Of a stretch of DNA of 64,000 nt, positions 6,090-38,132 are shown piece by piece; within the stretch, counting starts at the first letter, position 1; every line of letters begins with the position of its first letter. The position numbers were made by a program, and so were the translations under genes. The stretch covers positions 189,906,001 through 189,970,000 of the forward strand of contig JBITNC010000001.1 of assembly GCA_050084985.1 (NCBI GenBank). Reading direction: 5' to 3'. This stretch comes from Nageia nagi. Taxonomy: Eukaryota; Plantae; Pinophyta. A model generated the notes under the pieces. The model saw only the letters and a program-made list of their open reading frames with translations, searched no databases and had not been told where the DNA came from.

Positions 6090-6770
6090 TGTAGACCCTA
6101 AATAATGTGATGGTGTAATTAATTAGAGGAATTAACACATGTACTATTTTTTCTATTAGTTAATTGACATAAAGCAAGAATATGAAAACAAATGATTAAG
6201 CATACAATTTTGTTTCATTAATATGCATATTGAATTGATCAAGGAAAGGTATACATCAAAAATAAGCAATATCATATACACTAGTATGAAATCAGCACCC
6301 TAGTAATAGTATGCCATCGATGTCATGTTAATGATCAAATTAAAGATGTGAAGAAAGATGAAATAATAAGTGAATGAATGATTTATCAATATAATGAAAG
6401 TATGATAATTCTTTAGATAAGAGATTCACTTCTTATAGATAATAAGACCTTGCAAAAGTTTGCTTTGCAAATGATGTTTGAGTCCTTGATTATCTATCTA
6501 ATCTTTAGTTGATAGAAGCCTTGGGTCGTCTATAATCTACCCCTTGTCTAGTCTCCTCCTGATGATAATCCCATCCCCCATCTTTGTATGTCTTTAATTC
6601 CTTTATATAGTGATGCTTCTATTATAGGATTTGACCCCTTGTATAATCCATAAGGGTTAAATATATGGCCTACACCTCTTTTACATTTTAAATCCCTTTT
6701 TAAATTATAAATTGTTAAGGGATTAAAATGATTTATTAAATACATAAAGGTTCATTTTTAGATGTCTACA
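6090..6770 (-). repeat. 3' LTR of the PMD element
   Basis: Direct repeat of 14140-14820, TG...CA termini. Confidence 0.92.
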
Positions 6771-20387: not shown

Positions 20388-20862
20388 AATTCCCCCTTTT
20401 GATACAAGTTTCATGAGATGCAAAACTCAACTCAAAAGTTAAATATTAATGACGATGATTATTGCTTTGATAAATGATGAATGATTGTGTTGATATTTTG
20501 ATGACAATAAATGAGGTTTTGATAATGATTGAATGATAATGATTAATTATAAATAAGATATTGATAATGATTATTAATTATTAATTATTAATTATTAATG
20601 ACTAATGATGTTTTATTAACATGAATGGTATGCATACATATGTAAACCTACCACACTCTATGGCAAAAATGGTAGGCGTTCTCAATGATATGGTCAATGC
20701 AAAGGTGACTAACTAATGGCTATACTAAATGCTTGGTACTCAAGGTGATTCATGCTCAATGATATGATCATACTACCAAAAGGAAACTTTATACCATGTG
20801 GATTGGAAGGAAAAAAAAAATAATGGTAGCAACAACCTTATTACAAGTGATAATGATGATGA

Positions 20863-21337
20863 CCTTTCCCTATATTGAATAGAAAGCAAGGTATACCAAG
20901 GATAACTTTTCCCCATGTTGAATGGAAAGAAAAGAAAAAAATAGGATTATGATGCTCAAAGTATCTTTTCCCATGCTAAATGGAAAGCAAATAAAACATA
21001 ATGATAAGAGATAAATTTGCCCCAAGTTGAATGAAAAGCAAAGGATCTTGCCCCATGCTGAATGGAAAGTAAGATGAAAAGTGATAACTTTTCCCCATGC
21101 TAAATGGAAGGGAGAGGAAAAATAATACTCAATATTTCCCCATGCTAAATGGAAATCAAGAATGATAATGGTAACTTCACCCCATGCTAAATGGAAATCA
21201 AAGAGAAAATAATAATAACTTTGCCCCATATTGAATGGAAAGCAAAAGAAAAACAATGATAAATGTTTCCTCATGTTGAATGGAAAGAAAGTAAAAAATT
21301 ACTTAAATGATAAATTTGCCTCATGTTGAATGGAAAG
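20863..21337. repeat. Tandem array of a conserved ~20-bp core (ccccatgYtRaatggaaag) with variable spacers, ~11 copies, continuing at 35637-35730
   Basis: Core copies at ~20868, 20911, 20970, 21020, 21051, 21093, 21138, 21180, 21224, 21269, 21319, then 35655 and 35704. Confidence 0.9.
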
Positions 21338-22145
21338 TGTTGATCAGTATAATGTAATCTCAAGGGTTTTTTCTAGTCATGTTCTCTATTGCTTGCAAAA
21401 GTAGGGTCCTTGAAAGAGTAGAATATGGTGGGGAATGTGCTCATGTTGGTTTTTTGCTCAATCTTTAGATTATAGGCCGGTTCTTATCTATGGTGAAGGT
21501 TAAAAGTAACTAGAAAGAGATAAAAAGGCTAAGAGTAATAGGAAAGAGATAAACACATTAAACTAACAAAGTAAATTAAGACTACATATCTTGAGAATTG
21601 CATCATAGGTAGCAATTCATAGCCAAGATTAAAAATAGTAAACTATCTTTCCCTTGGGGTCTTGCTATCACAATACATAGCCATAACTTAAGATAGCATT
21701 TCATACATAACATTCACAAAATGTAATAAACAACCACATATTGTAGAGGGAAAAGCATTATAAAATTGCATTACCACACATGAAAGCATCTTACATACTT
21801 GGAAAAAATTGCTAGAATGTTTGACCCTTTGGGAAAGATAGTTTACTATTCTTAATCTTGGCTATGGATTGCTACCTATGTTGTAATGATTGGGCTATGT
21901 ATTATTAATTTGCTTTGTTAATTTAATGTGTTTATCTCTTTCCTATTACTCTTAGCCTTTTTATCTCTTTCTAGTTACTTTTAACCTTCACTATAGATAG
22001 GAACTAACCCATTATCTAGAGATTGAGAAGAAAACCAACATAAGTGCATTCCCCACCACCTTATTCTCTTTTGAGGACCCTACTATTGTGGGAAATGGAT
22101 AACATGATTAGAAAAACCATTGAGGTTCAATTATACTGATCAATA
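21338..22145. repeat. Fold-back terminus: Y' (21338-21653), X' (21654-21830), Y (21831-22145)
   Basis: 21338-21653 is the reverse complement of 21831-22145. 21338-21830 is the reverse complement of 35146-35636. Confidence 0.92.
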
Positions 22146-22395
22146 ATAGAAAAGTCCATTTTTGGCATGCCCAATGGGACACAAGCTAAATTTCATATTT
22201 AGTGGGCATAAATAGGCAAGATAGTTGTGTCTAGTAAGCTATCACTTAGTGCTTTTAAATATCATAAGGTATTTTATTTACCTTATTAGTGACTCTACTA
22301 TCAAACAGATAGCACTTTGAACCCTAGCACCTCCAAAAAGTAGACTTACTAGAAGCAGTGCTAAAAATTCTCTTAAACAACCTATATTTCAATAT

Positions 22396-25300
22396 TTGTT
22401 AGTTCCTAATAGGAGGACTAGGAAAATGATTTCTTGGACTTTGTCTCCTCAAATCTCTTTGAAATTTGTCCCATTATCAACCATATTTAACTCTTTCTTG
22501 AAAAATCCTTCACCTGATACAACTAGTCCAAATATTGCTCAACTTACTCCTACTAATTTTCTTGCTTGGAATAATGGACATCCTTTGGTTGTCCCTACCA
22601 ATTCCTTAGCTATTCCCCAAGGAACTTTCAAAGTTTTGCATAAGTATGATGGGTCTAAAAAAATACCATATGAGCATTGTCAAAATGTTTCTCTTTTAGC
22701 TTCAAGTTTTCATATCACTAATGAAATAGTGATGACTATATTGTCATTGCATTCTTTTGAAGGCAAAGCAGCTGAATGGTTTAGAACTCTCACCCCTTAA
22801 TATATAAATAACTGGGGAGAGTTATGTAATTTTTTTATCAAAATATTTGTTGTATATGGTGATGATAGTACCTTTCTTGACCTTATAACATGTATAAAAA
22901 GACACCCTCATGAGTCTATTAATGATTTCAATATCATATTTAAGAAAATATGGAAATCTATTCTGGTTAAGATTAGACCAACAAATGCACAAGCTTTGGT
23001 ATATAATAGGAAAGCTTTTCTTCTTGATCTTAATATGCTTATTGTTATATCTGGAGATACTTTCTTAGATGTTTACCAAATGGTTAAAAACTTTGACAAT
23101 ACCTTGGTATCCTCTGGAAAGATACAACCAAAAACTATTATAGCCTTATTCCCCAATTTACCTCCTAAATAAGCTCCACAAATTGCTCATCCTAGAAAGT
23201 TAGCATTACCACCTCCTCCTCCCAAACCTATCATTCAAAATCAATTACCATCACTACCTACTCTTGTATCTACTATTAAAAGTGTTGATTCTAAGTCTTA
23301 AGAGAATAAAGGATAAATAAATTAGACTAACCATTAGAAATATTAACAATAACCTTGCTCTCCAAGAAATGTAGAATCAAGGTTTCAATTACCAAGATAT
23401 GATAATCAGTATCAACCTAGATTTTAGCCTAGGAATAAAAAACTAGAATAGCCAATTGTTCCTAAACCAATTGATAATGTGATTATGGCTAGTTCTATGG
23501 AGAGTGATATTTTAAGCATTACAGAATGGTGCCCTACATGTTCAACTCTTCACTTCCTGAACTCATGCATCATCTATCAATACCAATATTTAGGCTTGTA
23601 TTTAGATCAAATGGTGAAACTTGCATCAAATCCTACTGTTGATCTTACCATGGTTAATTTTTGTCTTCCAATTTATGCTAGAGAATAAGCCAATTGTATT
23701 TAAACTAGAGCTTCTCCTTCAATAGCCCTATAATAGCTCCAATTCACTTAGCTAAATCAATAAACCATTCTAGTGCAACCTAAACTAAAAAGAGCTAAGG
23801 CTCCTATGAGTCAACCATAGAATCAAGAAAATCAAATTCTTATACATCCAAGTCATATTTCTCAAGACCCAAGTAATATTGTCTCTATAGTAGTAAATCC
23901 TATTGCAACTAGAAAAGAAGTCCCAAAGAAAGAGAGGCCGCAACCATTGAGATATCTTTTTATCATCAATTACCATAAGGAAAACGCTACTTAGTAGTTC
24001 AGAACACATTAGCCTATAGAAGAAAGTAATTCTATCTCTTATGCTTTATATAACATTATGTAAGAACTAAATAAAACACCTTCTAAAATGATCATGTTTG
24101 ATGCATTAATGATTATGGGTCAGATGGACCATTTGCAAGAATATTTGAAAAAAATAGTAAAAAAAGGGTAAATGAGGGTAATGTTGTCTTTACAGTATCT
24201 TATGATGTCCCTTCAACTCTTATAGGTACTAAGAGACCCCCACCTTTTTATATGTCCCATAGACTAGAAGGTTGGGTAGTTAATAATTATATGATAGATA
24301 CTGGAGTTGTTATTACCATGATCCCCAAAGCTATTACAAATGAAATGAAGCTATATATTATGAGATGCATTGATGGAGTCATACAATTAGATTCTTCTTT
24401 GGTAGATTTTGTTGGTGTGTTAAAGGAGTTTCAATTACTATTAATGCATTCTTTAATATTTGTTTCATCTAATATTTTATTATTGTTGACCTTCCACCTC
24501 TATTTGGAATTTGTTTGTTTAGATAATTTACTGCCAAATTGGGAGGGTACCTAGCTTTAGATTATACACATCTTTTACTTACCTTACAAAATAAATAAGT
24601 GAATATTCTAAATGAGGGTACCAAAAGTTTTAATCTTAAGAAAATCATAGAGCAAAACTATATGAATGGTGTTGAACCTATACAATTGTTTGAAATGGAT
24701 ACACTCATAGAAACACTATTAAAAAATGAAATTCTTTCAACAAATGATATCAATTATCAAGTCATAGATATTGACATGGGAAACTATTATTTATATGAAA
24801 ATATACAACCAAATTCAATCACAGCTGAAAGAGAGCATGAGATATGGAAAATATATTTTCATGGGGCAAGATGTAAACATGGATGTGGAGTTGGTGTTGT
24901 GTTTAAATCACCAAAGGGACATATGAGAAGATTCTCATTCAAATTCATATGGATTTGTACAAATAATGCTATTAAGTATGTATCCCTCTATTTAGGGATA
25001 TCCAAAGCAATCAGTATGGATATCAGATGTCTAATTGTGCATGGTGATTCTAAACAAGTCATAAAGCAAGTTAGAAACTAGATTAGTACAAACTATCACT
25101 ATCTGAAAATGTATAGGAATAGGGTATGGTACTTACTAGAGTCATTCCTTACTATTAATTTTATCTTTATTCCTAGGAGGTACAATCAAGTTTTTGATGC
25201 ACTTGCTAGCAAAGGGGCAAGTTATAATCCTATTGATTACAAGAGAAAAAATTTTGGAGTCAAATTCCAATGTAGGCCATCAATTCTTGATGTTGTAAAC

Positions 25301-28271
25301 TTCTTACAGGTGTTTAAATCTGATGAGCATATTATGAATTTCCTATTAGATGAAGCAATGGCTCATACCTTTGGTATTGAAGAACTACCTGACTATTTCC
25401 AAGAGTTCGATGTAATTCAACTTAGCTAAAATGTCATACCAAAAAGATTACTCTCTTTTAAAAGATTGTTTGATTTAGAAGATGTTCAAAATGTCAAATC
25501 TTTGTCCATTCAAAAGAAGGGTAATATTGAGCTAGAAGTAGAGCCCATGAAATATATAAAGATTAGATTAGAATGCTTTGAAAAAGAAGAAAAAAATATT
25601 ATTTTTCATATTTATCATTAGTTTTTAGAAGCAATTGCCTAGAATTATGATGATTTGAAAACATATGACAAAAATGTGATCCAGCATACCATTGAACTTG
25701 AACTAGAAGCTAAAGCATATAGATAAAAATAGAAGTTAATTAACCCAAAATAGAAGAAGCCATGAAGCAAGAATTAATCAAACTACTAGATTCTAAAATT
25801 ATCTACCCTATCAAGCATTCTTCTTAGATTGCTAATTTTATCCCAACAAGGAAAAAGAGTAGAGAAATTAGGATATGTGTAGATTTTAGGAATCTAAATT
25901 AGGTGTCTCTCAAAGATAACTACCCTCTCCCTCCCATGGAGCAAATCTTTCATACAATAGTAGGAGCATGCTATTTTTTTATGATCAATGGCTACTCAAG
26001 ATTTAACTATATTTGGGTAAAGGATGAGAACCAGTTCAAAACTACATTCACAACTAAATGGGAGACATTTTCTTTTCAAAGGATGCCCTTTGGGCTTTCT
26101 AATGCTGGAGCTACATTCCAAAGAGCCATGGACCATACCTTTGGTGATCTGGTAAATAAGATGATCCTAGTCTACCTAGATGATATCATAGAGTTTTCAA
26201 GAAGTAGATAAGATCATATGCATCATCTTAGGCAAGTTTTTGAAAAATATATAGAGTTTGGGATCTCAATCAATCCCAAAAGACCATTTTTATGGTTAAC
26301 CAAGGAAAATTGCTTGGTCATATTGTCTCAAAAAAAGGGTTGGCAATTGACCCAAAAAAAGTAAAAGATATTGAAGTATTACACCTCCCCTCCAATAAGA
26401 AGGCTCTACTATATTTCCTTGGTCAAATCAATTTTGTAAGAAAATTTATTAATGATTTTTCAAAAATAGTCTCTCTAATTACTGTAATGTTAAGGAAAGA
26501 TGTGTTTTTCTTACCAGATGAAGCAAAGCAAGCTTTTTAGGATATCAAAAAAGCTATAATAGAATATTTTATTTTAATGAATCCAAATTTTTCAAAATAT
26601 TTCATTATGTATGCATATGGAGTAGAGAAAAATATTAATGCAAATCTAGCATAGAAAGATGACTAGAAAGAAGAACATTTGATTGCCTTTCATAACCAAA
26701 CATTGCACCAACACCAAAAAAGGTATTTATTAATTGAGAAGCAAGTGTTTTCCATAATGAAGGGACTTAAGAAGTTTAAACATTATGTGTCCCATAATAA
26801 GATCCTTATGTATACTATTCACCCTAATGTAAGAAATTATGTCATTCAAGGAGAATTGGGTGAAGGGAAACCTAGTTGAATCATAGAGATAATGGAATAC
26901 GATGTAGAAATTAAACCAACTAGGCTTATTAGGGGTATGGGTCTCTTTAAAAATGTAGCATAAACCTCACACATGATTTCTATCATAGAATATGAATAGC
27001 ATATCAATCTTGAAAGTGATTAGATAAAATAATTTATTTTTTATTTTCAAATTAGTAAATGTTCTAAATCCCAAGATAAATTTCAAAGGAGGAGATTCAA
27101 GCTACAAGATTTAAAGTTTGTGATGATAGATTACCATATTTATAGGAAAAAATTTGATCAAATCATATTAATATGTATGACTCATGATGAAGCCTAGAGA
27201 ATATTACATGAATTTTATTATGGATTATTTGGAGGACATTATAGTGGTCTAACTATAATAGCAAAAGTGTTACAAGTTAAGTACTATTGGTCTAACATAT
27301 TTTAAGATTCATTCAAGATAGCTTAGGAGTGTAAAAAATGTAGCAGATATGGAAGAAAAAGAAGACAAGTAGCAATGCCTCTCAAACCTATGGTTTTTAA
27401 GGAGCCTTTCCAACAATGAGGTCTTGACTTCATTAGTGTTATAAATCCTAATTCCTTAGCAATCCATAAGTTTATTTATACTGTAATAGATTATATTACA
27501 AGATGGTTAGAAACTATGCCATGTAAAAATGTAGATCAGGAGTAAGTGATAGAGATAATCAAGAGAATAAACACTTGCTTTGGTATCCCATATATTGTTG
27601 TATCAAACAATGATCATGCATTCATCGAAGCTAATTTGTCAAACTTTTTAGCTAGATACAAGATCTACTAGTTATTATCTTCAAACTATTACCCATAGGG
27701 GAATGGGTTAGCAGAATCGACCAATAAGAACCTAACCTAGATCATTAAAAGAATAATTGAAGGGAATTCTAGATAATGGTATACATAATCAAACTATGCA
27801 TTATGGGCATACAGAATTAGCATCAAATCAACTATCAAGACATCCCCTTATGCATTAGTATATGGTAAAATACTAGTACTACCAATTAATCTTGAGTTAC
27901 TCGCACTAAATATTTTGCAAGAGATAGAGGACTATGAATTTGAACCACTACAAGCTAGATTTAATCAGCTTCTAAAGTTGGAAGAAGATCAAAATAAAGC
28001 ATATGAGTCCTTCCAACATAGATAGCAGATAGTTAAGAAATGATTTGACAAGCAAAAGTCTTTTTGAGTAAAGTTTGAAATAGGATACATTGTCCTCAAA
28101 TGGGATGAGGAAAGAGCAAATCCCAAGAAATACCATAAGTTCGATTCCTTATGAAGTGGAACCTACATCATTACTCAAAATATGTAGAATAATGCATTTA
28201 GACTATAAGATATCACTAGGTCTCAGGAGCTACCTATCCTAATAAACAAAATCTATTTGAAATACTACTAG
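22396..28271 (+). pseudogene. TatII gag-pol pseudogene: gag ~22400-23300, protease ~24230-24600, archaeal-type RNase H ~24840-25250, RT ~25830-26400, RNase H ~26550-26950, integrase ~27150-28270
   Basis: SFEGKAAEWF (gag), MIDTG (protease), WKIYFHGARCKHGCGVGVV..TNN..HGDSKQVIKQV (aRH), RMPFGLSNAGATFQRAM..VYLDDII (RT), GHYSG..YYW and GLDFISVINP (integrase). Confidence 0.93.
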
Positions 28272-28834
28272 GTGATAAAGTGATTACACAACACCCGCTA
28301 AAAATTATACAGTGTATAAATTGTATTTAAAAAAAAATGGTTTATATATTCCCTCATAACTTATGCAATTTCTTGAGGAAGTAGGTAGCCATTAATGTGA
28401 TGAATTAACTAGGCATGGTGTGGAATTAGGCTTGTTTATCATTAATTGTTCAATCAAAATGACAACATTTAAGGAAGGAGATCTCATTGGAAAACCCACT
28501 AGTTATGCCCTATCTCTCTATTTAAATTTGGCACAGTTAAAATTAATGTATTCCTACCTGTAATTCATGACATCGTACTCCACACCAACCTTGACATTCT
28601 TTGGTTATTAAATGACATTAATAGATATCAACACAACCCTTAGGAAAATAAAACAAACTCCCTAAACCCTCCTATTCTTCACTTGGCAAATTTTAGAGCA
28701 CAAGTTTCTAAGAAAATCAGAGCTTAGAGGTTTTAGAGCAAGTTAAGTGAGGAATAAGAGAGTTGCAAAGCTTAATATTGCAAGTTTGATTATTTTTTAT
28801 GTTGACTCACTTTGCAAAGAAAATAGTATACACC

Positions 28835-31800
28835 ATGATGACAACCAAGGAACCAACTATGACTCAACATGAGGGGGTGAACGCTAATCTCATAACAATT
28901 CAAGAGGAATAATTGGAGAATGCTCCTAGCATAAATTGGACAGAGATGGGGGTCATTAATCATATGGACACTTGGCATGTTGATCCCATGAGGATCCTAT
29001 TATAGCACCTAAAGATCAAGGTTACAGGTAAAGGTAAATTACTAGTTGAATCCAATAGGAACATCATGATAGACCAAGGTCTTGCAATTATGTGCCTTAT
29101 GAATCTTTCACCTATCCTAATTTGATGTATGCTATCATGCTCAAGCATAGCCCATAAGGGTATGAAATTGGGGCTTTCAAGGAGTAACAACTAGAGGAGG
29201 TAGAATCTAGGTATAGGCATAAGATAATACTAGATTACTCCCTTGAAGCAATTTTGCATGCATTTGCAATCCTAGCTTATTGGACCTTCCACATCAAGAA
29301 GCAAATTGATCTAAAATGAGACAACATGGACTTTTATTGAAATGAATCTAAAATGTTGGATTGGATTTGTAATGTCCCCAAATTTGTAAAACGTCCACTT
29401 TCTCTCCTCTTGGAGTGTGACGTTCATGGCAAAGGAGGAGAAACCAAAAATAAATTAATTTAGGAGTATTTTATTAATATTTTGAATTTATTTCTATAAC
29501 CAAGGCTAAAGAGACCCTTGAGGCACTCACCCTTGGATTTTATTTAATTAATCTGGCTCAATTATTTGTAATTAATGCAATATTAGCCTCTCATAATGGG
29601 ACATTGCATTTATGATCCATTGATCTTGTAATTTGGCATCTCTAGGCAACCATTGTGGGATGTTGGGCTTCCTGGGTCCCTAGATGATTTAATTTGTCAT
29701 CCCAAGACACTAGAAGAGGGACGTTGCACTTTGGGTGATTCCAAGGTATGAGAGATCTTATTATAAGAGGAGATGGGATGCATCATTGGGGGCATGCTTG
29801 AAGATCATCAGAGTTTATCTCTTTTCGGGGGTTAGCAACTAGTGGAGTTGTAGCTTTCCAGCTAGCTTAGAGGGAGAGCTCGAGCTAGTATGGAGGAGTT
29901 CTTACCTAAGCTAGAATAGTAGCTCAAGCCAGTGAGGTGGAGTTGCTAGAGTAGCTTGAACTAGTGAGGTGGAGTTACTGGAATAGTTTGAGCCAGTGGG
30001 GTGGAAATATTCCATCCCTGATCCAGATCTAGCTAGTGGGGTAGATCTAGATCTAGCCAGTACGACCATATTCTAGATCCATATCTAACCTACCAAATTA
30101 GTGTGAGGAGGCATGTCCTAGATCCAAACCATCTGAATCAGTGTGAGGAGGCTCGTCCAACATTAGGGAGAAGAGGTTGAAGAACTTGCAAGGCCAAATC
30201 ATCCAAATCTACCTTGTGAGGGCAAACGTCCCCCTTCTTGAGCATTTCAGTATTTTTCCTTAAGTATTGTACTTGTCCATTTGGGAAATCCCAGCTCTTG
30301 AAGAATAAAATTCATTTTTGGCTCTATTTCGTATTTAATTTACAGATCTGATTTGAATTGAGCTAGTTAGAAAAATATAAAAATATATATAAATTCCTAA
30401 GTAGTAATATTTCAACTTGGAATATTACACTTTAACAAAAATTACATTTTGTGAGTTTTGGGGATATTATAGGATTGATGAAAGGTATGAGGGGAGATGT
30501 ACCAAACTCTTATAGAGCTATGACATCATCTCCTTTGAGAAGTCTTGGGATAGGAAGGTCCTGCAAGCATTGGCAATCATTCTTGGGAAGAAGACCCAAA
30601 TAGAAGCAGATGAAGCCATGATGAGGATAGCCTTTAATATAATAGAGGCTCACATCTGCTATGATTTTCTACTTTCATAACGAATGAGGTAAGAAAAAAT
30701 TTATTCAAAATAAAAAAATATGATTTTTAGCATTTTTCCTACTTGTGGTGGCTCATAGTACACCAAAAATTGGAGGTACTGGTGGAGATAAGACTTTAGG
30801 TTGAACCTGCAACCTTGACCATGGGGCCTATGCCAATTGACTTAAGAGTCCCCATATTAACCAAGTTGCATGGGTAATACTATGAATTCATGGAGAAATT
30901 TTATGCATTGATGATGTAAATTCTAATAGGGAATCCATCCCATGGGCTTTACCGATCAACCATGTGGGACCTACAAGGAGGAAACAAGATAGGTGACTAG
31001 TACTTCTTAAAGGACCAAACTATAATTATAAGGTATGGGTATTTTGAGAGTCCATTTTCCTACCTAAATTTTTGATTACCCAAATGTATTCTATAGAAAT
31101 GGATAGATAAATGTGTGCTATAGAAACCAAATATGGGGTTGGGGCTAATTTCAATCCCATTGTAAATATACCGATAACTACTAAAAATTTTACATTACTA
31201 GAAATAGAATGTAAGGATAGCATAGTTGATTTCATTGTACAAAATTTTGAATTAGACATGGCTGATTCCCCTTGGATGTATGAATCACTAAGGGAGATTA
31301 CAATAATTAAAAATTCAAATAAAAAGCACCAAGCCTTCACTCATGAGTATAGGTCCCATGTAGAGTATTTTTTAAATCAAACTAAGCAAGAAGTTGAGGC
31401 ATCCCTAGAGTGGGAATTTGTAACCTTAAATAAACCTTTGTTAACCCTAGAAGGTATTGAAAAATACAAAAATTGGAAGGTTAGGAGGTAAAAATTTTTC
31501 CTAAACCTGAAGGTTTTGGCCCAATTGAGAGATGAGTTAGATTGGGGCCCTAACAAGATCCATTATTTTACCAAGTTTAAATTTGAATACACCACCAAAA
31601 TCCATCATGTTGAAAAGTAATTATTTGATGAATTTAATTATGATAAATACTAGGAAGCCTAGTATACACAAAACCTACTATCAAAAGTGGAAGAACCTCT
31701 CCCACCTAGTTTTCAAGGAAAATTAGAAAGGGAGATAAACAAAAAAGAGTCTAGATAACTATCTAGTTCAACATAGCTAGTAAAAAGGAAGAAAGTAGAT

Positions 31801-33798
31801 CAGCCAAAAATAGCTACTTCTTGAGAATCCTCTCAAAATAAAAAATAAGAGGTCAAACTTTGGTGAAAGCACAAGTATAAAAAGCCTTGAAGGAGGATAA
31901 GAAACCCAAAAGAAAGCCCCAAACCATACAACCATGAGTACCCAAGATTACACAAAACTCCATCTCCTAAAGTTATTCAAGAGATGTCTAAAGCAATTAC
32001 CAAAGATATAGAGATGTTTGATGCTAAAGATACTAAAAAACCCTAAATCATAGACATCATCATTTACCAATATGCCTAGGAAGAAATAGGGGATGAGGTA
32101 TAGCAAGGAGGGGGCAATGTACTTGGCACAAGTGGTGCTACAGTAGCTAGAGGTGAAGTAGGCAGAGATGGAGGTGAAGATGAAGATGAAGATCCTAAGA
32201 AGAAGGAATCTGACCCAATGGATAAGACACCTAAGAAGGAGAAACCTATAGAAGAGAAAGAAGAGGAAGTTGAAATACTAGCTTCCACTCAAAACACAAC
32301 AAAGGAACCTCCATAGCAAACTCTAGTATCTACTTCAAGAGTAAGTATAGAACCACATTCTTTAATTCCTTTCTTTATAGCCTCACAAGAGGAAATTAAA
32401 AGTATTTTTTCAACTCAAATAGTTGATCCCATTAATTGGGAAACATTTGTAAATAAACCCTCTATGATCCTAGAGCAACAATCTAGGATTTTGAGTAAAG
32501 TAATAGAAATGGGAGATATCAAAATTGCCCAGATGCCTTTCAAATAAGGTTAGCTAGATATTACTCCCATGTATATAATAAATGTAAATATGTAGAGTGT
32601 CCTAGCTATTGATCAGTTACGATTGCTTGTAAATACTTCCATGGTGGGTGGCAAAAGTCTCCAATCTATGAAGAGTAAGATTGATAGATTAAATAAGAAG
32701 ATAGATCAGTATAAAAAAGAATGCTCCTTTAAATACAATTATTAGGTTGTAGAATCAGAATAAGGATTTATTAGGAAAGTTGGACAAGTAGAAGTTCGAA
32801 TTTCAGAAGAGACTAGATCAAGGTAAAGTTGAGCTGGAGAATGTAAGAAAACAAATAGAGAATCTGAAAGCTCAAGCCACTATGGTAGATAGATAGAAGG
32901 CTCAATAGACTAAATAAGAATTGAAAAACATGGTAGTAGCAAATAAAGTACTCAATGATGATAAGATAAAGTTTCTACAGATTATGAAGAACTTCAAAAA
33001 GCCCTTGGTTGAACAAATAGGAGAAAGGTTGGTGAGTTTATCATAGTTGCATTTATTGAAAAATCAAATAGAATAAGCTTTCCTATTAAATATTACCTAG
33101 GCTACTATGCATAAGTTAGCCCTAATTGTATCCAAGTTAATAATTGAAGGAATGCAGAGTTGTTTGAAAGCCCTAACTAAAAAGGATCTAGCTACCATCA
33201 CCACCAGGCGAAGGCAAACTATTTTGAGAATAACCCAAGATGTCTACAAGTTGTAGTACCTGATATTTATTATAGATATTTAGAAATAGAAATTGAAGAT
33301 AAAAATTGGTTTTATTAACAAATTCTTCCATTCTTTAATAGAATTAAAAGCCCCAAAATTATGGGGAAAGCAAGATGTATAGGGTAGTGCAAATCGATGG
33401 GTGGCCAATACTATTTAATTTTTGGAGTAGTCTTTCTCAGAGAAGCAAATCTCAAATCTATAGAAAATAAATGACATGGCTTAAGAGCCAATCATAAGGT
33501 TTTTATATGTTGGAAGATTGGAAAATATACTAATAAGTTTCAAAGCAAACACTATCAAATTACAAGCATGCCTTGTTTTATCCCAGACTGATTATCAAGA
33601 TTTAAAATATTTGTATACAAATTTCTATCCTTTGCTCCTAGTAGGGTTAATTCCACCACTCGAGACACCCATAAAAGCTTCATATAGGTAGGAAAGTGGG
33701 AGCAACAAGTAAAGGGTTCAATTATTTAGTAGGTTGAGACCTTGGGAACCACCAGAAGACTATTATTCTTTCAAAATCACACTCTAAAAATAGAGTAA
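28835..33798 (+). pseudogene. Long extra sense ORF downstream of pol in the TatII element (decayed, split by a solo LTR), function unknown
   Basis: Codon-like sequence continues either side of the solo LTR. Includes ORF 31111-31491, an acidic GGEDEDEDPKKKE linker and a K/E/Q-rich coiled-coil-like segment. Ends approximate. Confidence 0.6.
29368..30471. mobile_element. Solo LTR (1104 bp)
   Basis: TGTAATGTCCCC...GGGGATATTATA termini with perfect TSD GGATT (29363-29367, 30472-30476). Internal ~29-bp tandem repeats at ~29920-30004. Confidence 0.9.
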
Positions 33799-35145
33799 AA
33801 TTCTATTATTCTTTATTCTTACATTCATTTCAAATAAATCTATTCTTAACTCCTAGTTCTAATTCCCCTTTCATATTTTGTAAATGTTGGAAAGGTTTCT
33901 AGTCCTTATACTTAGTATTTTGATGAAGTTTTGTTGATTCAAAAGAGTTCTAGGTATTATCAATAGTTCGAGTATTATTCATGTATATAAGGCTTAACCA
34001 ATTTGTTTTAGAATTTAACTATTATCTAGCAAGTGCTGTAATAAATCTCAAAAATTAGTCATAGTCTAGTTTGATGTTTTTTGGTAATTGTACATAAGTT
34101 GAGATTCATGGTTCATGATTAATGTGTTAAAGTCATATTTGGGAAGTAATGTATCATGTCCAGGAAATATCATAGTATGTAAAGGAAGGAAATGTCTAAG
34201 TCAAATATGGGTATTGTAGGAAGTTAGGTCTTTTTGGGAATTATTGTAAATAATATTCTTTGTTGAGTTGAACTTACCAATAAGTGATGTTGTAAAGCCC
34301 TTGGATTTCTAGAGAAAATTTTTGTCATACACAGAAGATCTACAAGAGATATTTGGAGAAGCCATCTTCTAGAGTCCACTAATTTTGAGATGACATCATA
34401 CTTTTGGCCTAAAATTAGTAGCTCCTAAGATAATCAATAGTGAGAAGTATGACATTCAATGGGAGATATTTCAAAAATATAAATATATATAGCCTATTGA
34501 TTTTGATTGATGAAATCACACCTTTTACCTAAAATTTGTGAGTGTTAAGAAATCCCCTACCATCAGTAAAGCCCATCAAGAAGAAATAGAACCTACCAAA
34601 TAAGAGAAGGAATAATGAGTTGGGAAGAACACCCAGGTCCACTTGATCATAAGTGTTTGACCCCTAGGGCTCTATCAATGTGTAGACCATGACTCATTTC
34701 CACATGATTGTAGCAATTCTTCCTAGGATCTCAATGATACACTCTTCACTTCCCTCATTATTCCATGTAGCCCAAAACTATAGTGATCACCATTAATGGT
34801 TGTAGAGAATTACATGGCTACCGATAGAGCATAGGGTTAAACCATACCAATCAAGTCAGTATACAATACATTCATAATTAGTTATAGCATTGAGATGATT
34901 TAATCAAAGATAGATCAAAAGGATTACAGCTAGGAAGTACAACAGTTCAGAGATTTCAAATTTCCATATTTTGGTGTAGATTGTACTTATTCACTATGTA
35001 ATCTTATACAATTTTAACTTTAAATTGTACATTTGTAAATCATTCCTTATATTTTTTTAGTCAATAGGTTGGTTAAGTGAATTCATGATGAACAACCAAT
35101 TAATTGTAGATATAAATGTATGAATAGTGAACTATTATAGGTCAA

Positions 35146-35636
35146 AAAGGGTCAAAGATTCTAGCAAATTTGCCAAGTATGTAAGATGCTTTCATGTGTG
35201 ATAATTCAATTTGATAATGCTTTTCCCTCTATAATATGTGGATTTTTATTACATTTTATGAATTTTATGTATGAAATGTTGTCTTTAGTTGTGGATGTGT
35301 ATTGTGACTGTGACACCCCAAGGGAAAGATAGTTTACTATTCTTAATGTTGGCTATGGATTGATGCCTATGTTGTAATGCTTGGGCTATGTAGTGTTAAT
35401 TTGCTTTGTTAGTTTAATGTGTTTATCCCTTTCCTATTAATCTTAGCCTTTTTATCTATTTCCAGTTCCTTTAACCTTCACCATAGATAGGAACTAGCCT
35501 ATAATCTAAAGATTGAGTAGAAAACTAACACGAGTGCATTCCCCACCACCTTTTTCTCTTTCAAGGACCTTACTATTGTAGGCAATGGAGAACATGACCA
35601 AACTACACCCTTGAGGTTATATTATACTGATCAATA
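35146..35636 (+). repeat. Right terminal repeat (X 35146-35321, Y 35322-35636) of the TatII element
   Basis: Y is a direct repeat of 21831-22145, and XY is an inverted repeat of 21338-21830. Confidence 0.9.
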
Positions 35637-38132
35637 GAAAGCAAAGGATCTTGTCCCATGTTGAATAGAAAGAAAGACTAATAATGATCATATGATATCT
35701 TTGCCCCATGCTACATGGAAAGCAATGATGATAATGATCAAATTATGGTGCTAAAAGATATGATGTATGATATGTTGTAATGTTAATACGACATTGGATA
35801 TGACTTAAGATAGTTGATATCTCAAGCCTTAAACTATGGTAAATAAGGTGATGTCAACAAAACATCATGAAGTCATTGATAAGTGATTGTATTGATATTG
35901 ATATGCTCAAAGACTCATTATATGATATTGGTGCTTGATTTGAACATGGTTGAGATGCCAAAATATGCTTACTTGATATGATATATGGTCAAAGAATTGG
36001 TTTGATGAAGATATGATAATGATCAATGATAAATGCTTTGCTTGATTTTTATTTTATGAAATATTTTATTTGTTGTAAGATATGCTAAATGGTAGATTTC
36101 CTTTATATGATTTGAATTGGTGTTTGATCATGATGAAATGATATTTTCTCATTTATAACTAATGATTATGATGAAGTAAGTGAAGAGACTCATCCATATC
36201 AAAGCCATTATCACATGTTCCATAAGACTATATTCCCCTCATAAACCATGATAGTCAATAATCTATGATCACTCACAAGGGAATGATTTAAGGCAACCCA
36301 ATATAATGATTGTGAGCCAAAAGGCTATATCCTCATCAAGAATGACATTCATGCAGAGCGGTAATAACAAATAATCAAATGAACCTCAAATATATGCATC
36401 TATGATGATATGATTGTGATGTTAAGATGAGAGAAGCACTTGATGTAAGTATCCAAAGACAATGATCAGGTGATGATGATGATAGGGATAATGATAATAC
36501 TGATTATGATGGTTATGCTAATAATGATAATATGATAGAGTATTATATAATATGACATGATAATGTGATGAGAATGCATGCTACATGATGAAATGATAAT
36601 GCTACTAATATTGACAAATGATAACAAAGACACATCATGTTGATAATTGAATATGAAAAATTGTTGTCCTACCCCAAAGTTTCCACTACTGGATGACTAT
36701 AAAGAAGGAGTAGGCTCTAGTATCAAGTCCCAAGATGCCAATATTATGTTGCATTCTTGATTAATAATGTTTAAATGGTGATATTTAGATGACAAGATAT
36801 GATAGCACTTAAGATAATTGATGATGATGATAACAATTTAGAGATAGTGTTCATATTCAATGGCTCATCCAATGAGGTTGCTATAACAAGATGGGGGTCC
36901 AACCTCATAATAATATTTCTTATATGATATTGATTTTTCTCCTTGATCATGATTACGCAAATGGTTATTGAAAATATTCAATATTGATTAGGTGGTTTGA
37001 TTGGTTCTCATGTTGATACTTGACCATTATCAATAAGATCTTGGATCTCATGCTTCAATTGCATGCACCCATTGGTGTTGTATCCATATTGCCTATGGTA
37101 CTCCCAAAACTCATTTTTTTATGTTAACACCTAAAAGTGGTCCCCTTAATATGGTCCCACTTAGGTAAAAATTTACACATACAATTAATCATATTTAGTC
37201 ACATTTTAATCATATTTTACCTTAGTATCATATATTTCTCATGTTGTCTTCTTAAGTTTTATGTTAGGTACATTGGAATGAATTAAACCAATATTCAACT
37301 AGTCAAATAGTAAATCATGTCTAATATAAATGTAATTATCTCTAACCTGGGGAAAGCATGTCAATATTACATCTCGATAGTCAATACACTATACTTGGGT
37401 GTATCTAAACACCACCTGTTGAGATTGGAATCTTATTATCACTTGAGCAAATATTTGTTATCCACTTTTGTGATAATATGTTCAATTAAACTTTTCATCA
37501 TATTTGCTAGCATCAATACTTGTTGAAAAATCTCATTTCTTCAAGAATGTTTGCACCCGCATTGATGTTTAAACTCGTGCTAAGCTTTTAGAGACCAATG
37601 CTTGCACTATCATTTCTTCTATAACTGGCCTTAGGGTTCATACAATAAGGTAACCACTCTTCAACAAGTTCATCTATCATATCCTTGGCTTCTAAATAGG
37701 TAAGGATACATAGGTATTTATCTTTCATTCAATTCCTTTCTCTTTAGTGTGTGTAGTTTCATTTTATATATTGACATCAATTGTGCTTTCATTACTCTAT
37801 TACTTCACTACTAAATTCTATTATTCATGTATGTTTATCTAAGTTGTTTAGCTTAGGTTTACCATACAATAAATGATTATGTGCTTTTAGTTCATTTAAA
37901 TTGAAACCCTAGGTGATACCAAAACACATATCAACACTTTGTACCAAGGTCTTGTTGAAGCTCTTGGATTTTCCTTGATTAAGGGTAGTGTCAAAATATT
38001 TTCTTGTAATAACTTTGATAGGATATCTGATAAATGCTCCCCCAAAGGAGTGAAATCACTTATTTTCCTTTGATTATTGAATTTCTCCTACTCACATGTG
38101 ATTTGTTGATGTATTTATATGGTTGATTGAGG

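Follow-up and report, generated by a model that had tools for sequence, protein, structure and literature searches.

DIRS elements use a tyrosine recombinase, produce no target-site duplication (TSD) and carry an internal complementary region. The 5' inversions of L1 elements arise by twin priming, in target-primed reverse transcription at the chromosome, without long terminal repeats (LTRs) and without an integrase. Inversions have been reported among defective HIV proviruses, and textbooks hold that self-primed strong-stop DNA is a dead end. Minus-strand strong-stop DNA of retroviruses can prime itself, a recognised side reaction of reverse transcriptase (RT) that is regarded as leading nowhere (PMC6088434); the form dependent on TAR (the trans-activation response element) in HIV-1 is that of Guo et al. 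(1997), which PMC6088434 reviews. For complex plant LTR-retrotransposon insertions with TSDs, abnormal template switching has been proposed (Sabot and Schulman 2007, PMC1950507), and these TSD-bounded complexes are the closest plant precedent for the element described here. This element is an LTR retrotransposon at positions 21338-35636 of a 64-kb stretch of the conifer Nageia nagi (contig JBITNC010000001.1; the whole stretch is called the window below), and it begins with an inverted piece of its own LTR. No integrase-type LTR retrotransposon with an inverted end of the U5-U5 type (U5, unique 5' region) was found described in the literature searched, the coverage of which was incomplete.

Layout of the element and its left end

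The element extends from 21338, where its outer end is TGTTGATCAG, to 35636. In the following, Y is the last 315 bp of the LTR (35322-35636 at the right end), X is the block before it (35146-35321), and a prime marks an inverted copy. A first-pass annotation of this DNA had claimed the order Y'X'Y ... XY, a U5-type end at both outer termini and a flanking GAAAG. All three were reproduced: the order by repeat finder and BLAST alignments, the ends as TGTTGATCAG on the left and CTGATCAATA on the right (35627-35636), and GAAAG at 21333-21337 and 35637-35641, adjoining both ends of the element. Positions 21338-21830 are the reverse complement of 35146-35636 (repeat finder and BLAST); they are followed by 21831-22145, a direct copy of 35322-35636 (88% identity, BLAST), by a 17-nt spacer and then by TGGCATGCCCAATGGGAC, a motif resembling a primer-binding site (PBS). 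Y' occupies 21338-21653 on the minus strand as the inverted last 315 bp of the LTR, its outer TGTTGATCAG being the reverse complement of the CA end, and X' occupies 21654-21830 on the same strand as the inverted form of 35146-35321, terminating in GACCCTTT, the complement of AAAGGGTC. On the plus strand, left Y (21831-22145) is all that this copy has of a direct 5' LTR, and the spacer with the PBS-like motif fills 22146-22180, the motif itself lying at 22163-22180. Y' and left Y were also returned by BLAST as an inverted pair (21340-21661 and 21823-22143, 84.8% identity) separated by a spacer of ~170 nt. Instead of two direct TG...CA LTRs, this copy has a 5' LTR made of Y'X'Y, with a 5-bp TSD present.

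No U3 (unique 3' region) or X in direct orientation precedes left Y, and ~1.56 kb of LTR is gone from this position. The first 1.38 kb of the LTR, which is U3 with the TATA box, is absent from the left end in either orientation, and a search of the 64-kb window found no other U3-like, LTR or element fragment of the family. The junction between X' and left Y (21819-21841, plus strand), GTTTGACCCTTT joined to GGGAAAGATAG, was read from the alignments and is unique in the window. The junction 22-mer had no match in a collection of viral contigs, a blank without weight, since the family is absent from that collection altogether. The join is preceded, at a distance of 3 nt, by a 5-nt homology, GACCC; the spacing that results (GACCC-3 nt-GGG) equals that of a normal Y.

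The inverted match was reported by the repeat finder and BLAST as 21340-21854 against 35119-35634, with 85.1% identity. It reaches 35119/21854 because a 14-nt stretch of the TATA region is similar to the start of Y in reverse complement, and no extra copied sequence is involved. This stretch is complementary to the start of Y at 13 of 14 positions in the window and at 7-11 of 14 in related elements. The inverted repeat that it forms around X was considered as a signal for fold-back priming and was rejected, because the inverted copy does not include it and the join does not contain it.

The ordinary form of the family

The N-terminal part of gag (22426-22797) was used as a query and identified six metagenome loci, L001-L006. 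The hit coordinates of L001 and L002 were identical, as were those of L003 and L004, and each pair was counted once, giving four independent relatives that are ~75% identical to the window element. In all four, the homologue of 34373/34561-35634 is in direct orientation and immediately precedes the PBS-like motif and gag. Weaker LTR homology extends to ~33762, where all four relatives start with TGTATTCTTT, and the sequences upstream of TGTATTCTTT are mutually unrelated among L001, L003, L005 and L006. The shared start and the unrelated upstream sequences mark the LTR boundary and place the length of the family LTR at 1.6-2.0 kb. By this alignment, the complete 3' LTR of the window is delimited at 33762-35636 on the plus strand (1875 bp; U3 from ~33762, then X and Y), and XY is only its last 491 bp. 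The 5' LTRs of the relatives are direct, with the ends TGTATTC...CAACA, and an inverted LTR piece was found in none of the four.

These data do not bear out the earlier view of the ~490-bp terminal repeat as the LTR, since the repeat unit is the 1875-bp LTR with a TG start, found direct at the 5' end in the four relatives. The statement that no polypurine tract (PPT) and no TG-starting U3 precede X means no more than that X is not the start of U3. The "extra ORF" (open reading frame) region held up in part only: a portion of it is U3 of the 3' LTR, and the rest lies within 28200-33760.

Contigs of four public sequencing runs were aligned with the left end of the element. The family is very abundant in these runs, with summed contig depths that are ~2-90 over the flank and lie in the hundreds to thousands across most of the element. 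Many contigs on left Y depart just before 21835 into the normal X end, and joints between 21667 and 21831 on opposite strands likewise give the normal X-to-Y order. The direct LTRs of the relatives, together with the contigs in which X is followed by Y, indicate that the ordinary form is U3-X-Y. The copy in the window belongs, as an aberrant member, to a conifer Ty3/gypsy family of Tat type with high copy number, and it is not a different kind of element. One of the four runs is labelled as an air metagenome and contains the family at depths like those of the other three; airborne pollen would be one explanation.

Several further features of the family were recorded. The PBS-like motif and the 17-nt spacer are kept in 4/4 relatives (alignment); the motif stands 17 nt past the CA end of the LTR in every copy, an unusually long spacer that integrase would need to trim. 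No transfer RNA (tRNA) gene was detected in the window by ARAGORN. Within Y, a 29-bp tandem duplication was detected by Tandem Repeats Finder (TRF) at 21496-21553 and 21931-21988; as it is present in both left-hand Y copies, it is older than the insertion. The family U3 contains tandem repeats of ~100 bp with varying copy number, seen as offset BLAST hits at 34370-34540 in the window, at 3550-3810 in L005 and at 8276-8502 in L001. Upstream of its 5' LTR, L001 also carries an RT fragment (6632-6754) that is ~71% identical to 26000-26122 of the window and is probably a piece of a related element, either adjacent or nested.

Integration, age and the proposed route

The left flank (20860-21337) is a minisatellite with a unit of ~44 bp (CCCCATGCTAAATGGAAAG...; TRF period 44, 6.5 copies), the last 5 bp of which are the left TSD. 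The right flank (35637-35735) starts with the second GAAAG, after which the minisatellite continues. The target array measures ~570 bp in total and shows higher-order periods of 87 and 131 bp; minisatellite-like units were seen at low depth in all four sequencing runs. When the element and one GAAAG were removed, the rebuilt empty site was ~90% identical, without gaps, to 21011-21069. GAAAG occurs 11 times in the array, and the chance that two independent array sites share a 5-mer is 0.006.

The three Y copies were compared with each other and with the relatives, which served as outgroups for counting unique and shared-derived sites. The pairwise differences are 14.6% for Y' and left Y, 14.3% for Y' and right Y, and 11.5% for left Y and right Y; the Kimura two-parameter (K2P) distances among copies are 0.125-0.165. 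The difference between X' and X (12.5%) is in line with these values. Unique differences numbered 25 in Y' and 17 and 15 in the other two copies (chi-square 2.95, 2 degrees of freedom, p ~0.23), a result that agrees with the roughly equal divergence noted by eye in the first-pass annotation. Shared-derived sites by copy pair were 4, 1 and 3, with no signal uniting the two direct Y copies. With these even unique counts and no shared-derived excess, the three Y copies fit a star tree, all of them dating from one time. At a conifer substitution rate of ~2.2e-9 per site per year, the copy would be tens of millions of years old.

The cDNA (complementary DNA) was most likely already rearranged when it integrated, because only chance could have made a later rearrangement of the DNA stop exactly at the end of the LTR that adjoins the TSD. 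The same claim had been made before, and it is supported by the ungapped empty site, by the 5-mer chance of 0.006 and by the star tree.

Fold-back of a tRNA-primed minus strand, as first suggested from the sequence, is still the best mechanism for such a cDNA. We consider it slightly better than an even bet that self-primed minus-strand strong-stop DNA replaced the plus-strand strong-stop and that the product integrated via two U5 ends. The TATA box of the family is TATAAAT in L001, L003 and L006; in the window, the TATA region (35119-35146, plus strand) has TATGAAT at 35119-35125, and a second TATAAAT lies 35 nt upstream. The inverted copy ends between C and AAAGGG at 35146, 25-27 nt downstream of the conserved TATA box, and from the position of this box we infer that 35146 is the transcription start. 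If so, XY would correspond to R-U5 (R, the terminal repeat of the RNA), and Y'X' would be the exact tRNA-primed minus-strand strong-stop DNA.

The proposed route would begin with tRNA-primed minus-strand strong-stop DNA (Y'X', 491 nt plus the 17-nt spacer) reaching the 5' end of the genomic RNA. The first strand transfer would then have failed to occur, and the 3' end would have primed on a minus-strand Y', either its own, by folding back, or that of the second strong-stop in the particle. Copying of Y', the spacer and the 3' end of the tRNA would have yielded Y'-X'-Y-spacer-PBS. Because the self-primed product would carry a PBS at its 3' end, it could replace plus-strand strong-stop DNA, annealing to a full-length minus strand from a co-packaged RNA in the place of the PPT-primed product. 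Extension of both strands would have generated the duplex Y'X'Y-PBS-gag-pol-U3-X-Y with a U5-type ...CA at both ends, and integrase would have inserted this duplex into the minisatellite with a 5-bp duplication. The part missing on the left is exactly U3, which only the PPT-primed plus-strand strong-stop supplies, and the 3' LTR is complete; self-priming would explain this loss of U3 alone on the left, the intact 3' LTR and the position at which the arm ends.

Six points weigh against self-priming. The transcription start at 35146 is deduced from the TATA box. On a Y' template, the last three bases of X' (TTT) would not pair; pairing is limited to GACCC, which lies 3 nt further back and matches GGGTC. 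When the presumed strong-stop strand was folded as DNA, no hairpin was favoured (z +0.9 and +1.0), and the loop would measure 177 nt, unlike the small fold-back of the TAR type. Among the short family contigs listed from the four runs, none bridges the joint of the flank with Y' or that of X' with Y. The Y' branch is also somewhat longer than the other two (25 against 15-17), without reaching significance.

In HIV-1 self-priming, as proposed here, the 3' end of the tRNA-primed complement of R-U5 primes on minus-strand DNA after RNase H action and gives a U5-proximal inverted duplication; the HIV-1 reaction, however, is a dead end in vitro, has a small hairpin loop and is suppressed by nucleocapsid protein, whereas here the loop is 177 nt, the product was apparently completed and integrated, and the match with R-U5 is drawn from the TATA position only. 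Twin priming of L1 resembles this case in that the inverted 5' part comes from a second priming during cDNA synthesis. The complexes of Sabot and Schulman (PMC1950507) share with this copy one 5-bp TSD and terminal repeats of equal age, and they were taken as rearranged before integration. They contain three direct LTRs and two internal domains, whereas the present copy has one internal domain and an inverted terminal partial LTR in place of the 5' U3.

The same final structure, with U5 at both termini, a single TSD and copies of equal age, would also result if the U5 ends of two cDNAs had been co-inserted and their inner ends trimmed and end-joined by the host, or if two broken cDNAs had been ligated head-to-head before integration. 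The near absence of terminal homology at the join suits end-joining. We regard this explanation as unlikely; it requires two molecules and two breaks, and it leaves unexplained both why one break is at 25 nt past the TATA box and why the join preserves exactly the GACCC-3 nt-GGG spacing found in a normal Y.

Two members of the family inserted independently and oppositely oriented in the same small array, followed by a deletion between similar stretches near 35146/35322, would account for the structure if the deletion had removed most of the first element, the intervening host DNA and the 5' U3-X of the second. The flanks, however, rebuild an ungapped segment of the array with a 5-mer match of low chance (0.006), and no excess of shared changes is found in the two direct Y copies (4 vs 1 and 3). 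In favour of this reading, plant LTR retrotransposons often undergo illegitimate recombination (PMC1950507), the branch of Y' is the longest by a small margin, and the array contains GAAAG 11 times. A second strike of the same family on an array of only ~570 bp would be unlikely, and no remnant of a second element was found in the window, so that the double insertion is judged quite improbable.

A shade more improbable again is a normal insertion with a later DNA-level rearrangement in the 5' LTR, by template switching in replication or by fold-back repair. Inverted duplications do arise at short inverted repeats, and the window has the 13/14 inverted match around X, but the join is not at this 14-nt repeat. 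It would also have to be a coincidence that the inverted arm stops precisely where the LTR meets the TSD. In addition, Y' is no nearer to either Y than the two Y copies are to each other, indicating that it is not a later copy.

The inverted-LTR family with a PPT-independent replication route, which the first-pass annotation had put forward, is contradicted by the ordinary direct 5' LTRs (1.6-2.0 kb, TG-starting) of all four independent relatives and by the normal X-Y order in contigs of the four runs, and it is very improbable. Nothing besides this single copy supports it. A left end without U3 or TATA box has no promoter, makes no genomic RNA and leaves no descendants, so that the form cannot propagate. 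The annotation's own alternative was a one-off aberrant reverse transcript, to be recognised by ordinary direct LTRs with a PPT in other family members; it is this alternative that agrees with the relatives. An assembly artefact from a palindromic chimeric read is scarcely credible: fold-back chimeras are known in long-read data, and none of the listed short contigs bridges the junction, but artefactual palindromes have identical arms, whereas the arms here are ~15% different, which rules out such a chimera, and are separated by a 177-nt loop.

Coding remains and meaning for conifer genomes

The internal region is heavily decayed, and its longest stop-free stretch is 160 codons. All coding remains are on the plus strand. 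A decayed gag broken by stops was identified at 22426-23169, 54-74% identical to the related gag proteins P0001-P0005, of which P0005 carries PF03732; a search of representative proteins added short gag fragments only. Pfam matches demonstrated a decayed RT at 25903-26208 (RVT_1, E 6.5e-11) and a decayed RNase H at 26667-26876 (RT_RNaseH, E 1.7e-11). Decayed integrase pieces at 27198-28022 were recognised by eye from zinc-finger and DDE-like motifs. The short window pieces had no Pfam match, and the homologue of the integrase piece in L006 matched Integrase_H2C2 with E 3.4e-5 (24.3 bits vs a cut-off of 25.5). The order RT, RNase H and then integrase is that of Ty3/gypsy elements (Metaviridae). 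Weak pieces of RVT_3, an archaeal-type RNase H, were found upstream of RT at 24599-25426 (Pfam E 0.0035 and 0.0027, both below cut-off), and this placement is consistent with a Tat-type element. Taken by its domains, the element fits a Ty3/gypsy retrotransposon of Tat type, with weak matches for the Tat-specific RNase H. Between integrase and the 3' LTR, 28200-33760 (~5.6 kb) gave no Pfam match; a 32-bp tandem repeat is located there at 29910-30005.

No recombinase domain was detected by Pfam in the pieces scanned. The element resembles DIRS elements in having inverted terminal repeats around a reverse-transcriptase-coding element, but, unlike them, it is flanked by a 5-bp TSD, it retains remnants of RT, RNase H and integrase of the gypsy type, and the LTRs of its relatives are direct.

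The copy is single, old, dead and without a promoter, and nothing suggests that it has a function or has spread. Most likely it is a real fossil of an aberrant reverse transcript, a one-off event representing neither a new family nor a replication route. For annotation, the lesson is that the real LTR is 1.9 kb and that LTR finders will miss or mis-split such copies. It may be, although we think this rather unlikely, that folded-back strong-stop DNAs have been rescued and integrated via two U5 ends recurrently in conifers, forming a class of hairpin-ended LTR insertions that LTR finders miss and that could be sources of double-stranded RNA. If self-priming did generate the copy in the window, this genomic fossil would show that a self-primed strong-stop product can be completed and that integrase accepts two U5 ends in vivo, and aberrant reverse transcripts would add structural variety, long hairpins included, to the giant genomes of conifers.

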